Source: Hemiscyllium ocellatum (taxonomy: Eukaryota). Taken from it: DNA of 64,000 nucleotides. The DNA lies in the NCBI RefSeq assembly GCF_020745735.1, contig NC_083446.1, positions 6,558,433 to 6,622,432 of the forward strand, read 5' to 3'. The first letter of the stretch is position 1. Every line of letters begins with the position of its first letter. Positions 22,501 through 34,500 of this stretch are shown here, in pieces. Position numbers and translations under genes: made by a program. The notes under the pieces were generated by a model. It ran no database searches, was not told the DNA's origin, and saw only the letters and a program-made list of their open reading frames with translations.

Positions 22501-25500
22501 AGTTTGCTTCTGATACCTTTCTGTAATGTAAGCATTCATCCAAGACTTGATGGAGCACAGGTTGAACTGATTTCCTCACAACATCTTTATTATAATGAAG
22601 AATCTGGTCCAGATGTTCAACAACTGTTTTCTGTCCCGCTGTCCACAAAAAAAAGAACATTAGAAGTTCTCACCAAAAACAAAACCTTTGAATACATAAC
22701 TTTTATCATCATTTTGCCAGTGGCAATCCAAATAGCAAACAATTGGACATACTAGTTGCAAAACCAAGACCAGCGTTTCACCAACAATAGCATTTATGTT
22801 TTCTTAAAAGTTTTAAATATGGATGACATAATTAACTTCACAGTAGTGATAGAAAGGAAAGTCAAAGTAAAAGATGGCTTTGTCACCGTAATTATTTGTG
22901 TCTTTTTTTTAATGGGTCAATAATGTAAATACACTTGATAATAAAAGCTTGTTGACCAGGCTTTGTGAAAGTACCTATTACATCCAACAGCTCGAAGTGG
23001 AAGTCATCCCAGTATTGGATGAAAAGGAAAAGAAGCAGCATCTGTTCTTGGGCTCTACCAGATTCAAACCAGTCATCTTCCAGGATTGATTGAAGTTTGT
23101 AACTGATATCTGGACAAGCTAATCCTGTGATAAATACAAATATGTACAATGTAACTGGCTCTTAAAAGTTATTTTCAGATTTCTTTTCCCTGTCTGGCAG
23201 ATGTTTACTTTTATGGAGGTGCATACCAATGAAGTCACTAGTCCTTTAGTATCACTGAAATGGCCATTTTCTTGCATGATCTGGTGATTATCGATGCATA
23301 TTAACCATACAGTGCATCATATTTGAGGTAGACCCAATCCTCACCAAGCAGACACATGCAACATAAATTACTGCATCGTGATTCAGAGAGGGAGCCTTAG
23401 TTGAATGTTCTGTTCCATTAATCAAAGTTATTGGGAGTTCTATCCTATAGCTAAGCATGGCACATCTAGAAAGTGTGTCCAGTGACCAATCAGCAAGATG
23501 TTTAGTTTAGGCTTTGCTGCAACAATGCACAACTAAGTTAAATAAAACAAGTAAACACACAAACATTCAGAACAGGACCCAAAGTAAAACACCTCCTGAG
23601 TTGATTGAGAGCAGGTGTTTATCATTGAACTTTGTGGACTCTCTTGTTGTGTAGTAGTACAATCTCTACCCCTGAAATGAGAGACCCAGCTTCAAGTCCC
23701 ACCTGCTTCAAAAATATGCAATAACATCTTTGAATAGATTATTTCAAAAAATAGGTTAAATAAAACTTCTGTGACCACTTGGTCAGACTGAAGGAGCAGC
23801 ATCGGTGAAGGTGCCAACCATTTCAAGTATCTCTGACAGGACCAGATAGAGGTCACATGCAAACTTCAGAAAGAATGTGCAGCTTGGTGCGGGAGTGTGT
23901 GGTAGCCAGCGGTCAGACCATGTGGAGGCCCCTGTGCTGGTCTGATGCAGACAGCCTTTGGAGAGAGACTGTGATGTTGTCTTTTTAACTTTGCTTCTTG
24001 TTTTTTTCTGATACTGTGTATAGTCTTTGTTTTTTTCTTCATTTCCCCACTCTTTAACTAAGGATTGTACCTAGAAACCTTTGTACCTAAGATGGCAATG
24101 CAATGTGGTGACTTTTAAACCTTTCACTGTTCTCATTTGAGTACGTGATCATAAAATTCCAATCCAAATATCAATCCAAGCTGTTCATCAAATACATCCT
24201 TTGTTATCTACGGCAGGGAGTTCCAAATCTAGCATTGGACTATTTTGTTACTTTAGGACCTACAATTTCAGAATGGAAGGAAGTCACACTAAGGAAGCTA
24301 AGAAAACAGGAGTACTTCTGGAGTGGTTGTAAAAAGTTATTGAGTATGAGGTCCTCGGTTGGGGCTGTTAACCCGGGCCAATCAGGGAGCCCTGTCTGAC
24401 ATATAAACAGGAGGTTCGGAGAGTCTCCTCACTCTAGGGACTGGATCTGAGCTGACTGATCAGAGCCCATGTATATTGCATATGTAAATAAAGGGTAATT
24501 TGGTAATGGTACACTGGCCTCTGTTCAGGTATTTCAACTTCCCTTATCTAAACATCCGTTTTGCTGTCACTATTGTCTACATATTAAGTTGCATTACAGG
24601 TATACAAGGTGGTTAAGAAGGCATTTAGCATGCTTGCCTTCATTGCGCAGACTACTGAGTATAAGAATTGGGGCATCGTGTTGAGGCTGTATAGGACACT
24701 TTTGGAGTACTGTGTATAGTTCTGATTGACCTTCTGCAGGAAGGATATTATTAAATTGGAGAGGGTTCAGAAAAGATTTAGCTGAATGGTGGGTTTACTA
24801 AAATCATGAGGGATAAGATAAGGTGGGGGAGTTCAAAACTAGGGGGCATATTTTTAAGGTGAGAGAAGAAAGATTAAAAAGGGACCTGAGGGGCAACTTT
24901 TTCACATAGAGGATGGTTTGAGTGTGGAATGAAATGGCGGACGATCTGGTAGATGCAGATATCATTATAGCATTTAGAAGACATTTGGATAGATACATGA
25001 ATAAGAAAGGTTTAGAGGATTATGAGCCAAATGCAAGCAAGTGGGACTACTTTTACTTTGCAAAACGTGGCTGGCATGGATGAGTTATACCAAAGGATAT
25101 GTTTCTGTGCTGTATGACTCCATAACTCTAATTAAGAAACAAGCTTACAGGGCCCTCTTGTGGTATAGCAGTAGTGTCCCTACCACTGGACTGATATGCC
25201 TGGGTTCAAGTCTCAGAGATGTGCAATAACAACTTTGAACAGATTGATTAGAAAAATAGGCTAAATGTAAAAAATTCTAAAAGCATTTAAGAAATGGGCT
25301 TAAATGCCACAGGTAATTTGCTGGTGGGGATAAAAAGCCATTTGGTTGCCAGTGACAATGGCTCTAGATATTAAAAAAAATTAAGAGGTAGGCCTGCTAG
25401 AGGTGTGCAATAACAAACCTGAAAAGATTGATTAAATGCATTTACACTTGTGAATGTTTCTAGGAGTACTCGTGGTCTAGTGATAGTGTCCCTGTTTCTG

Positions 25501-28500: not shown

Positions 28501-31500
28501 CAAGTGCAGTAAGTCTACAGGCTCCATGCGCATGTTACTCCTTCAAATAAATTGGTTAAATATGATTTTCTTTGACAAAACCTTGAGCAAGTCTATAGCT
28601 CCTTGAAAATAGCAACAAAAGTGGATAATGTAGTAAAGAAAGCATATGGCATGCTTGACTACTTCAGTGGTTTACCAGGATGTTGCCTAGATTGTAGTGT
28701 ACTAGCTATAAGGAATTCCTGAAGAAGGGCTCATGCCCAAAACGTCGACTCTCCTGCTCCTTGGATGCTGCCTGACCTGCTGCACTTTTCCAGCAACACA
28801 TTTTCAGCTCTGATCTCCAGCATCTGCAGTCCTCACTTTCTCCTAGCTATCAGGAGAGGTTGACACCCTTGGATTGTTTTCACAAGAGCATTGGAGGCTA
28901 AGGGGCAACATGATAGAAGTATATAAACTTATGAGCAGCGTGAATAGGGTGGATAGCGGAGGGTTTCTTTTCCCCAGGATGGAAACCTAGGGGGCATAGG
29001 TTTAAGGTGAGAGGGGGAAAGTTTAAAACAGATGTGCAAGGGAAGTTTTTTTACACACTGGGTGGTAGGTGCCTGGATCACACTGCCAGGGGAGGTGATA
29101 GAAGCAGATACAATAGCAATGTTTAAGAGGCATTCATACAAACACATGAGCAGGTAGGGAAATAGAGAGATGCAGACCATGTACAGGCAAAGTGGATTAA
29201 TTTAAAATTGCATCATGACTGGCTCAAAGGGCCTGTTCCTGTGCTGCACTGGTCTATGCTATATAGCTACAACAGATTGACTAAACTGTTTTACTACTGT
29301 AACATATCAAAAGTTAACTGTTAATTTTAATTACTCATAATGTCTCCTAATGGGTTTTACTCAGCATTAAGTAATTGCAAAAATTCAGCAAAGACGGAGA
29401 AAAATTACACCCTACAATTATACCGAGGGGAACTATAAATGCTCAGTGTAATGTATTTTACATGGACCATGCCTTCTGTTTATAACTTCAGTTTTTTTTA
29501 GAAAAGCTCCCTCATTATTAACGAGTTGACTAGCTGAATTACACAAATCAGGCAGATTTCTAGTCTGTGTTGTCAGATGATTTGAGCCAAAGCAATGATT
29601 GAGATGCTACAATCTGGGGAAAGGAGTAAGATCTGCCATATTCCTGACCCTAATAAAGGGAAGACACAAGTAATAGCTGCAAATAGGATCATTGTATTTA
29701 GGATACAATTGTAAGAGTTAAATAAAACATCTCACTGTAAACTGAAAATATAATGAATAGCCAGTTGGGAAAGCATTGCATATTCCTGGAGCCTTATCAG
29801 AGATTAGGGAAACCACCTCAGGGGAGAGTAGAGGAGAAATTGTTGGTAAGAAGGGCAAAGAAGATAATGAAGTGGACAAATACAATACACATTTGTATTG
29901 CCAGGAAGCTATTTACAGCTAACTAAATGAATCTATAAATTCTGTTTTATTCATGATAAGGGTTCTCTGAACAGCTTTATCTTTGTCATATTAGAGTTTA
30001 TCTTTGTGTCCCACAGTTTTGCTAACCCAGGGAAAATGAAAAGATTTTGTAACTATATTATCCACTTTGTCAGTTTGTAACTGAAAATTACTGCAGCTCA
30101 AATAAAGACATTCCACTGAATGTGCACAGCTCATATAAACAATATTTTAGCCACCCTAAGGCAATTAGGGATAGACAATAAACTCCAGCTTAGCCAGCAA
30201 TGTCCAGTGCTCATGAGCAAATAAAAACCCTTAGAATATCGCCTTTTGATAAACAAATAAAAACTTTCCTTCTGTAGTCCTTTCATCTGTATTTTGAGTC
30301 AGACGTTGACCATATTGCTTCCAGTTTGCTAGATGAGATGGATCCATCATGAATGACAAAGAATTTATGTTGTTTTTGAATAATATTGGCAAGTCAGCTG
30401 GTCCATATATAAATATATGTGTTAAGTCAAGGAGAGCTGTTTTGCAGGTATTATTGACCTGAGAGCGATTTGCTAGTTCCAAAATGATATCCTGGAGGTT
30501 AAAGTCCTTTCCACCTCTACTCCATGATCTAATCGGTAAATTGCAAACATGTTCCTCCACCTGCTGTTTGAAGACAGGGATCACCCAAAATCTGGTGATG
30601 GCTATTCTGCCACCTACCTTCTTGCCTGTAATCTTTTTGAATTTTATTCATGGGGGGTGGGGGGCGCGGGCGGTACAGAGAAAATATTGCCCGCAATCCC
30701 TTAATGCTCTTAAGAGGTTAATTCATGTCCTTTTATGAGTCTCCCTCCACTGTCACCAGTCTTTCATCTTTTTGGAGCAGGGAGCCCCACCACATGTGGG
30801 ATGTCTACCAATTTAATTTCATGAGCTGATGTCAGATCAGCTAGTGGTAGTGGCGGTAGTTGCGTGTTGGGGTTTCACTCAGGACTTTCAGCATCATTCA
30901 TGACAAAGTAACCCTGTTAATTGGCAAGTTATTCACTACATTATCATTTGCTCTTCATTGCCACCATATTGTACATGGTACACATTACAGATAAGATTCA
31001 ATCACTGCAGCAACTCACCAAACTTTCTTCCCAAAGACTACCTTGGAGGACTAGGGCAGCAAATGTATGTGAGTTTTAAAGGTCATGGGTTTGGGAGGAA
31101 ATGTTGGAAAAGCCTTGACAAATTGTTGCCAAGATTACTGGCTGTACCTGTAAGTACCTGACTGGGTCACACATAATCCTGGCTTGAAAACATGCATCCC
31201 TCCATTATCGCTTGGTAAATAGTTTGGAACTTCTACCAATCAGCACCGTGAGAGTACATTCACCACATGAATTACAGTGATTCAATACATCAATTCACTA
31301 CGATCTTCTTAGGCCATTTAGGGTAGGGCAATAACTGTTGTGTTCCTAGCAAATAGGAATGTTCCATAAATTACCAGCATCATGTCCAATTTCATATTAA
31401 TATATTATTCATTTGCGTGCCTTTGCAATTCAATGTGTGTCGTTAAAAATAATATTTTCATGGAGCCTCAAAAGGAAGGCGCAGTTCAAGGGCTAGGCTG

Positions 31501-34500
31501 TCAAACCTATTCAAACAAAGCAATTCTCTGGGTACTAATTAGGGAAAAATGAAAGCTAATTTGCATTATGACAAATTATTTGCATTTGCTAGGATCACGC
31601 TTATTCATATCAACCACGATAGCTATCCTCATATAGTACACGATGGAAGCATGCCGCAAGATGTGCAAATTCCAGCAAGAAACTTATCTTCCATTTACAT
31701 CCACATGTTATATACACTCTTTCTGTTAAGGATACAGATATATTAGAAACTCCAGCAGGCTTGTTAGGATAGTTCTTAAGGCAAGGGCAAATAGCAGCTA
31801 TTGATAATATCTCAAGCACTCCACACAATCCTTCTTCAGCCAGTTTGTTAGGAATCGAAAGAGGAAACAACTTCCCAGCAACAGGATGGAGTCTATAGCA
31901 ATGTGAATCAGCTGCACATTCAAAATTTCTGATCAGAAAAAAAGTAGGTTAATGCACAACATAAACAATATATATTTACAAGATAACTTTTGTTAAGCAA
32001 AATAAAACTGCTGGTGAAATTCTGGGAAATCCATTAATGTGATATGTTTGCAATATTTAAGAAGCAAATCTATGTAAGAACTTAACAGATAATGAGGTTT
32101 TATTATGTGATAGAACATTCCTGACAAAAATCATAGCTTGAACCAAGTAATTGTTCAGGACTTTTCGCTGATCATTTTGTACTACAGGTGACACAATTTT
32201 TCATGCATTAAAATTAACAATGGTCCATTGTGTGATACTTGTACTCAAACGTCAGATTCACAGTCAATTATTAGCATTTACAAAGCAGACGAGTGACTCA
32301 AGAGTTCAATTATAGAAAGTTGTGAATTAACACTAGAGAAAGCTTACTCTGCAAATTAACAATTTGAAATAAAAACACAACTTGTTAACTACTGTCCTTC
32401 AGGGAAGGGAGTTTGCTTGTTGACTCTTAATACCCATTAACTTTTATCTGGTAGCTTATAAAATAATCACTTGGCTCACCATCAATTTCTCAGGACAGCC
32501 ATAATAAAGGCTTTACTAGTTTTGTGCACAACTCAAGAACGAAAGCTTTATTCTGGCAAGTCATCATTTAATACTTACTTGATATAGTGAGTGCTGTCAG
32601 AAAGTACAGTATGTCTGTTACTGCAAAATTGGTCCAGTTTCTCACTCCTAAATTTAAAGTATTTTAGTTACTGTTAAATCAAATTTGTGCATTTTAATTT
32701 CTCATAGTTCTTGGTTTTGCTGGCAAACATCATTTAGTTATGTTCAGCAATAGTATCTTGTACATACATAATAACAATGCTGTGCAGCCAAACCCTGCTC
32801 ATGATACACCTTCTTTACTTTATGTAACCTTTTTGGGTAGTTCCATGGTTTATCATTTGTCTATGGGTTTTATGTTGCACTTAAACACTCAAATGCTGTA
32901 TCTACCATTCTTTCCAAGACTATGGGTAAGAAATTAGATCAGCAAAGTTGATGTACAACATTTAGTGTTATTGTAGCATTTCCGAGTATGCTATAGTATC
33001 TTTATCTAGATATTAACCCATTAAAATATGTAAAGAGAATTTGGCCATTCAAAAGCATGCCATACTGTGCATGTATGGCTATTTCAGCAGAGGTATCTTC
33101 TCCCCACTTGACAATCCCCTAATTTAAAAGAAACCAAGTTGCTTCCAAGATTCCCTGCAAAAGAAGAAGTAAGTGTAATTTTCCCCAGTAGTATTTACTG
33201 TCAACATCTGGGCATACTGCAAACCTGGAATCACAAAACTATTGAGGAAACGTGGATGGGGAATGCATGACAGTGACAATACTAAAATGTGGTTTCAATT
33301 TGATTCAAAGTTTTTGATTTCTATTGCCTTAAGGAGAGATTTGTCATTGGTTCTTTTTTTTTTAGATTACTTTTTTTTTAGATTACTTACAGTGTGGAAA
33401 CAGGCCCTTCGGCCCAACAAGTCCACACCGACCCGCCGAAGCGCAACCCACCCATACCCCTACATATACCCCTTACCTAACACTACGGGCAATTTAGCAT
33501 AGCCAATTCACCTGACCCACACATCTTTGTGACTGTGGGAGGAAACCGGAGCACCCGGAGGAAACCCACACAGACACGGGGAGAACGTGCAAACTCCACA
33601 CAGTCAGTCGCCTGAGGTAGGAATTGAACCCAGGTCCCTGGCGCTGTGAGGCAGCAGTGCTAACCACTGTGCCACCGTGCCGCCTTAAAGTGCCGCCGGT
33701 CTTCAGTATTCACAAATAACTGCAAATCTAGAATTGCATTATCCATAATCTCTTCCACATAAAAGCATAAACACTCATCATTTCATGTTGTTGTAGTTTC
33801 ATATGTCACAGGTAATTAATAACAAAATCCTCACTTCATCACCATCTTGACCATGCATACTGTCTGCTCCACTATGTAAAGTAAATCTTTCAGCCATTAC
33901 ATAGGGAATTGGTGAAACTGAAAAGTATGCAGTGACAATTTTCGGTCTTATACACAGTAGGGACAAGAATTATGGGGTTCTGGGTTAACAAAAGTTTGGG
34001 AATAGTAAGATAGTTATTTTATACTGATAATAAATAGTGATATTCTACATGCTGTTGCAGCGAATTCATAGTAAGTGAATATTCTTACTTGAAGACGTGA
34101 GTCGATAGATTACCATTTACTTTGACATAAAACTGGATTTTTACCTAAAAAATAAAGTTTTATCTTACTTAGTCTTGAGAATAATATTCAAAACTAATAC
34201 AACTTAAAAACTGACCCTGCAGTAACATTTAAAAACGTAACTTTTTAAAATCCAAATTGTTTTTTAAACCATATTAACAGTCAATTTTAATTTATCCCAC
34301 TGACTAATAGACTGTTTTCTTGTTTTTATTGATTTTAGTCTCTTGCACTTTTCTTCTATTTCGCTGTTGTATTTTCCATTTCTCTTACTCACCGATGCAA
34401 AATTATTCATATTGTTTATAATTTATCCCCAAACTACTCCTAATCAAAAGTACAACAATTATATTCTAGCAAACATCAAATTCTTTAAGGAGCTACACTA

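Follow-up and report, generated by a model that had tools for sequence, protein, structure and literature searches.

The gene TOP6BL lies on the minus strand of a 64,000-nucleotide (nt) stretch of the epaulette shark genome (Hemiscyllium ocellatum, contig NC_083446.1, positions 6,558,433 to 6,622,432), which we call the window and whose first letter is position 1 in what follows. Our main finding concerns intron 8 of this gene. It carries the donor and the branch-point sequence of a minor-spliceosome (U12-type) intron, and its 3' end has to be CAT. We consider it probable that this is a U12-type intron with the terminal dinucleotides GT-AT, where the use of CAT as the 3' splice site and the dependence on U12 are what we infer from its signals and its homology. 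The features that carry the argument are the following (here and below, a slash marks an exon-intron boundary or, in proteins, the exon junction).

31736 to 31928, minus strand: exon 8 (in the numbering of the preliminary description of this DNA), 193 nt, ending ...GVSNIS (...GTT TCT AAT ATA TCT), assigned by Pfam and by tblastn with shark orthologues
30417 to 31735, minus strand: intron 8, 1319 nt, phase 0, predicted U12-type, terminal dinucleotides GT-AT
31728 to 31735, minus strand: U12-type 5' splice site, TCT/GTATCCTT, with 8 of 8 positions fitting RTATCCTT and AAC next
30426 to 30433, minus strand: U12 branch-point sequence TCCTTGAC, with 30427 as the branch A and a distance of 10 nt from it to the last intron base (30417)
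30417 to 30419, minus strand: 3' end of intron 8, CAT (terminal AT), from the frame and the orthologue alignment
30269 to 30416, minus strand: exon 9, 148 nt, IFIYGPADLP...ERTTE plus the first base of a Gly codon, opening with ATA TTT ATA TAT GGA CCA

Signals and boundaries of intron 8

Both open frames that flank intron 8 match the Pfam family DUF4554 (PF15091, the TOP6BL/TOPOVIBL/C11orf80 family), and their exons are colinear. In the profile search, exon 8 covered profile positions 65-128 with 39.2 bits (cut-off 27) and exon 9 positions 132-176, and the two peptides joined together gave a single continuous match of 37.7 bits. Exon 8 is 97% identical to a bamboo-shark protein, and catshark (Scyliorhinus) proteins produced 15 colinear exon-sized tblastn matches, running from about 37334 down to 16542. 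The acceptor of exon 8 is canonical, with a pyrimidine tract and AG (TTTTTTTCTGATCAG/AAAT). A search with the shark protein found TOP6BL as a single-copy gene at one locus and no processed retrocopy with the spliced junction in the genome. Weak Pfam matches on two contigs (C17 and C56) did not reappear with the shark protein as query.

On the minus strand, intron 8 starts at 31736/31735 with TCT/GTATCCTTAAC and ends with ...TTAACACAT, so that the boundary 30417/30416 reads ...AAAACAGCTCTCCTTGACTTAACACAT/ATA TTT. Neither octamer is enriched in the window: GTATCCTT occurs 3 times against 2.1 expected, and TCCTTRAC 5 times against 5.4 expected, which is chance level and not above shuffled sequences. 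The probability that donor and branch motif fall by chance exactly at two boundaries fixed by homology is about 1e-8 per intron and, over all 14 introns of the gene, about 2e-7. The branch point of a U12-type intron usually lies roughly 8-15 nt from the 3' splice site. An uninterrupted pyrimidine tract is absent: the pyrimidine fraction between -25 and -4 is 0.59, largely due to the branch motif, upstream of which purines prevail. The closest upstream AG (30438-30437) is out of phase with the donor GTATCCTT, and AGs in phase with it are found at least 42 nt upstream, ahead of the branch site. Intron 8 thus has the donor, the branch site (TCCTTRAY) and the missing pyrimidine tract of a U12-type intron, while its termini are neither GT-AG nor AT-AC, which places it in the described non-canonical U12 subclass.

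DNA runs of two samples (S2 and S3) contain 100% of the sampled words of 30200-31950, which argues against an assembly error at the ends of the intron, unless one of these samples is the source of the assembly, as may be the case.

Where intron 8 has to end is determined by homology. Orthologues from a teleost, a lizard, a turtle, a salamander and the catshark S. canicula join exons 8 and 9 without any extra or missing residue:

salamander: TVS/IFLYS
turtle: AVS/IFFYDP
lizard: SLS/VFLYDP
teleost (Brienomyrus): DIR/IFLYGP
S. canicula (RefSeq model): NLS/IFIYGP

Since these junctions are free of insertions and deletions and the donor GTATCCTT is fixed, the shark intron must end in CAT. There is a one-nucleotide ambiguity at the junction, as TG...CA would yield an identical messenger RNA (mRNA), and we chose GT...AT because the U12 donor consensus fixes the cut. 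All in-frame, stop-free GT-AG, GC-AG and AT-AC pairs within about 120 nt of the boundaries were considered in three elasmobranchs (shark, skate and electric ray), and not one of these canonical pairs produced the orthologous junction or was common to the three.

The preliminary description, which had been made from the letters of the window, had named the gene as TOP6BL, placed the U12-type donor at 31735-31728 and the branch sequence at 30433-30426, and pointed out that a pyrimidine tract and an in-phase AG are lacking at the 3' end; all of this agrees with the results above. Its further argument, that the alignment SNIS/IFIYGP forces a CAT end, is borne out by the non-human vertebrate orthologues. 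The observed U12 signals and the CAT end are thereby confirmed as features of the DNA.

Selection on the surrounding sequence points in the same direction. Compared with the two batoids (skate and ray), the shark shows silent sites close to saturation, with a synonymous divergence (dS) of 0.9-1.1 in exon 8 and 0.76-1.32 in exon 9, and the ratio of non-synonymous to synonymous divergence (dN/dS) in these comparisons ranges from 0.09 to 0.19 in exon 8 and from 0.17 to 0.34 in exon 9. The latter value indicates purifying selection, and exon 9 is therefore translated in this frame and joined in frame on both sides. In the alignment, the last 18 intron bases (CTCCTTRACTTRACACAT/RTATTT context) are invariant in the three elasmobranchs but for two A/G differences, and ACACAT is invariant. 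As this block is nearly unchanged despite near-saturated silent sites, the terminal T lies within constrained sequence and is no recent lesion. Judged by this alignment, the stretch around the 3' end of intron 8 is under constraint since the shark-ray divergence.

The genome was also searched for the small nuclear RNA (snRNA) genes U11, U12 and U6atac. It contains one full-length U12 gene (144.9 bits) and one U11 gene (116.1 bits), as well as 38 U6atac matches above the Rfam threshold on several contigs (best 129.4 bits), many of which are probably pseudogenes or dispersed copies. The genome's own U12 snRNA contains GTAAGGAA, within ...ATGAGTAAGGAAAAT..., which is complementary to the branch motif TCCTTGAC; under the standard pairing scheme, the G of TCCTTGAC would form a G-U pair with U12. 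If intron 8 follows the established U12 model, its donor GUAUCCUU would be recognised by U11 and later by U6atac, and the U12 snRNA would pair with CUCCUUGAC, leaving the A at 30427 bulged. The second step would then take place 10 nt downstream, at CAU/ in place of the usual CAG/ or CAC/. A phase-0 GT-AT intron would be removed in this way and ...SNIS joined to IFIYGP..., the joint 31736->30416 reading ...AATATATCT/ATATTTATA.

The orthologous intron in other vertebrates and the adjacent intron 9

We compared intron 8 of the epaulette shark with the corresponding intron in five other genomes:

little skate (locus L007): TCT/GTATCCTTT ... CACTCCTTAACTTGACACAT/ATATTT, 1268 nt, GT-AT
electric ray, Narcine (locus L008): TCT/GTATCCTTT ... 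CTCTCCTTGACTTGACACAT/GTATTT, 6690 nt, GT-AT
teleost, Brienomyrus (locus L009): CGC/ATATCCTTC ... GTTCCTTAATCATATCCAC/ATTTTT (3' end also given as TTCCTTAATCATATCCAC/), 278 nt, AT-AC
emu (locus L011): GCC/ATATCCTGC ... CGCCTTGACCGGCGCCAC/GTGTTC (ends also given as ATATCCTG...GCCTTGACCGGCGCCAC/), 78 nt, AT-AC
lizard, Phrynocephalus (locus L010): TCT/GTATCCTTT ... CTTCCTTAGCTAGCAATAG/GTATTT (3' end also given as TTCCTTAGCTAGCAATAG/), 1223 nt, GT-AG

The position and the phase of the intron are identical in all six species, and in five of them 10 nt separate the branch A from the 3' end; in the lizard the distance is about 11 nt, counted by eye as the script found no motif there. The donor octamer GTATCCTT is the same in skate and ray, and also in the lizard, while ATATCCTT or ATATCCTG takes its place in the teleost and emu. 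The bony vertebrates (AT-AC in teleost and emu, GT-AG in the lizard) thus differ from the elasmobranchs with their GT-AT at the same intron. Further species can be read from gene models or fragments that run through the splice site: those of wombat, sturgeon, ropefish and tarpon translate the start of the intron as ISF or ISL, corresponding to ATATCCTT, and lizard-like fragments translate it as VSF. The ISF of the wombat suggests that ATATCCTT, and with it the AT subtype, is present in mammals.

By this comparison the intron is ancient in jawed vertebrates, an old, evidently U12-type intron that has changed its subtype. Parsimony makes AT-AC its most likely ancestral state; the elasmobranch GT-AT differs from AT-AC by two transitions, A to G at the first base and C to T at the last.

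Conservation extends to a block within the intron:

31688 to 31705, minus strand: conserved intronic block TGTGGATGTAAATGGAAG, +31 to +48 of intron 8, with 15 of 18 positions invariant in shark, skate and electric ray

This conservation contrasts with a dS of about 1 in the neighbouring exons. The block includes the motif GTAAAT, which is absent in Narcine. A conserved hairpin over the donor was also considered, for which RNAalifold, run on three sequences, gives no more than -10 kcal/mol and a covariation term of -0.88, too weak for any claim about structure.

On its downstream side, exon 9 is followed by an intron that is unusual in another way. Its ends, together with two exons further upstream in the gene, are as follows:

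30263 to 30268, minus strand: GA donor of intron 9, G/GAAAGT, U2 consensus except at +2; exon 9 ends ...ACA GAA G
23125 to 23126, minus strand: AG acceptor of intron 9, TTTGTATTTATCACAG/GATTAGCT, with a normal pyrimidine tract; exon 10 runs from 23124 (GA TTA GCT)
34091 to 34144 and 32578 to 32652, minus strand: upstream TOP6BL exons, with an intron between them

Intron 9 is 7144 nt long (G/GAAAGT ... CACAG/GA) and, as predicted from these ends, would belong to the GA-AG introns of U2 type. Its frame is fixed by the S. canicula junction VEG/LACPD. The GA donor is kept in skate (L007, about 24165) and electric ray (L008, about 54265), both of which read GGAAG/GAAAGT, while teleost and lizard have GT where the elasmobranchs have GA. 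As homology confirms the GA donor on one side and the acceptor on the other side is CAT, both boundaries of exon 9 are non-canonical, which the preliminary description had also stated and which the VEG/LACPD junction and the conservation in skate and ray now substantiate. Because shark, skate and electric ray share both odd sites, the non-canonical acceptor and donor around exon 9 were probably fixed before the shark-ray divergence.

As a side observation, intron 9 contains four sense-strand copies of RTATCCTT (26847, 25749, 25100 and 24748) in 7.1 kilobases, against about 0.35 expected. We do not take this excess as a splicing feature, as at least two of them (26847 and 24748) lie in copies of an interspersed repeat containing ATATCCTTCCT.

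Gene models, transcript hints and alternative readings

Nine elasmobranch RefSeq annotations besides that of S. canicula have TOP6BL truncated or split at intron 8 or 9, and among the elasmobranch annotations examined the S. canicula model alone spans both odd introns. The models of bamboo shark and little skate run into intron 8 and then stop, with a second model for the C-terminal half; split halves are also present in S. torazame, P. japonicus and Narcine, bringing the elasmobranch species with both halves to five. C-terminal halves were the only models found for Rhincodon, Heterodontus, C. punctatum and Heptranchias. Outside the elasmobranchs, the ropefish and sturgeon models are truncated at intron 8 as well, and the emu model translates the 78-nt AT-AC intron as 26 extra residues. 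Intron 8 and the adjacent GA-AG intron probably explain the truncated or split RefSeq versions of TOP6BL.

As for transcripts, sequencing run X1 contains 92% of the sampled words of exon 9, but across exon 8, the intron and exon 9 together the share drops to 22%. This fits RNA without most of intron 8, at the resolution of words, which does not reach the junction itself. In the search for homologous proteins, no transcript-derived fragment matched a 76-residue peptide spanning the junction.

Several points speak against GT-AT splicing of intron 8. The junction 31736->30416 is a prediction from genomic sequence and homology, and X1 comes from the same sample as one of the assembly data sets, its RNA nature being only a guess. 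Close to the proposed 3' end, 2 nt upstream of it, there is an AC whose use would shift the frame. The read-through in the bamboo shark and little skate models could mean intron retention and not a failure of annotation. Finally, S. torazame, P. japonicus and N. bancroftii have RefSeq models that read ...VY/IFIYGP; on the Narcine DNA, this protein calls for a CT...AC intron displaced by 2 nt and for a change of one base in the mRNA.

One may ask whether the VY/IFIYGP models show the true junction. On this view, both cuts of a CT...AC intron would fall 2 nt further upstream than in the GT-AT form, the 5' cut ahead of GTATCC and the 3' cut right after the AC that precedes the CAT end by 2 nt, with Tyr replacing Ser. 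On one hand, the Y at the junction occurs in three independent Gnomon models, and on the Narcine DNA only T/CTGTATCC...GACAC/AT yields the VY/IFIYGP protein. On the other hand, we know of no spliceosome that cleaves 2 nt 5' of a consensus RTATCCTT donor, and the S. canicula model and all bony-vertebrate orthologues set the boundary exactly at the codon before I/V-F-[IL]-Y. Moreover, CT-AC is GT-AG of the opposite strand and the resulting mRNA differs from the GT-AT form by one base; we thus read the CT-AC models as an aligner artefact and infer, with regard to the pipeline, that an aligner penalising non-canonical junctions would accept one mismatch (C vs A). A CT-AC intron is in our view very improbable. 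Even less credit can be given to the alternative that the preliminary description itself had named, in which a cryptic GT-AG pair, with the donor GAT/GTAAAT at about 31698 and the acceptor AAAACAG/ at 30438-30437, would let the major spliceosome do most of the removal; this would insert 19 residues (57 nt). In the shark, these two sites (offsets +37 and -20) keep the reading frame and leave it free of stops, and skate also has the donor GTAAAT, which belongs to the conserved block +31 to +48. However, the pair is not conserved, since Narcine has GG for the donor GT and skate has CA for the acceptor AG; no pyrimidine tract precedes this acceptor, and a 19-residue insertion is found in no orthologue.

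A different possibility is that elasmobranchs mostly retain intron 8 or skip exon 9, so that the splice site is decaying and the main product is a truncated protein like XP_043538934 or XP_055520748. Two RefSeq models do read into intron 8, and the gene is split in two in most elasmobranch annotations. Nevertheless, split models are just what is expected from annotation software facing a GT-AT and a GA-AG intron, and exon 9 and the exons downstream of it are conserved (dN/dS 0.17-0.34). The final 18 intron bases, nearly invariant across the three elasmobranchs, indicate selection for function, and skipping of the 148-nt exon 9 would shift the frame. We consider such retention or skipping very improbable, and the GT-AT reading of intron 8 is the one that we keep to in what follows.

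Relation to known introns and possible meaning

What is already known is the GT-AT class of U12 introns, one member of which lies in DEADC1 (now called ADAT2), and the place of Top6bl among the minor-intron genes of the mouse. Among non-canonical U12 introns, 4 GT-AT cases were listed in human and 3 in mouse, those of DEADC1 and SLC24A6 being conserved between both (Sheth et al. 2006, PMC1557818), and earlier mutational work, as cited there, found that GT-AT can engage in productive U12 splicing. Like shark intron 8, these human and mouse introns have a U12 donor that begins with G, a branch motif near the 3' end and a terminal AT, and are conserved between species. Unlike them, intron 8 lies in another gene and another lineage, its putative GT-AT state is common to shark, skate and electric ray, and it is known here from DNA. 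Mouse Top6bl has been counted among the minor-intron genes, and reverse-transcription PCR confirmed that its splicing changes when U11 is ablated (PMC12956336). It belongs to the same family (TOPOVIBL, DUF4554) and depends on the minor spliceosome in the germ line, and its minor intron may be the orthologue of intron 8. No paper was found that ties C11orf80, by that name, to U12 or a minor intron.

Switching between the AT-AC and GT-AG subtypes of U12 introns is well described: Lin et al. 2010 (PMC2831892) cite Burge et al. 1998 for it, and it also appears in Sheth et al. 2006 (Table 3, PMC1557818). As in this known switching, the orthologous introns described here differ in their terminal dinucleotides between lineages. 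Unlike in the described AT-AC/GT-AG cases, there appear to be three states at one intron, and the non-canonical one is stable across a deep clade and not transient. For the neighbouring intron 9, the closest parallel is given by the GA-AG introns of U2 type in FGFR genes (cited in PMC4176328, its references 8 and 9), which likewise have a consensus donor except at +2, a normal tract and AG, and conservation across species. Intron 9 differs from them in that it lies in another gene, directly after an exon that is preceded by a non-canonical U12 intron. New in our analysis are thus the predicted GT-AT state of elasmobranchs, its conservation since the shark-ray divergence and the three-state series at one intron.

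The preliminary description had suggested that intron 8 could be a splicing bottleneck limiting a protein that licenses meiotic double-strand breaks, which is for now a conjecture. One may speculate that the GT-AT acceptor, the GA donor and the block +31 to +48 together form a selected, regulated splicing gate, and not a neutral, frozen intermediate on the way from AT-AC to GT-AG. We regard this as unlikely. Such a gate might involve exon definition coupled across both spliceosomes and competition from the frame-shifting AC 2 nt upstream. If it were true, the gate would set the amount of functional TOPOVIBL, and hence the activity of meiotic double-strand break formation, in the germ line.

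Truncated proteins await anyone who studies the meiotic double-strand break machinery in these animals. GT-AT at intron 8 is not peculiar to one genome, as the predicted state is common to shark, skate and electric ray, and the presence of AT-AC, GT-AG and, as it appears, GT-AT at one orthologous intron bears on the tolerance of the minor spliceosome for the last intron base and on the route by which U12 introns switch their subtype.

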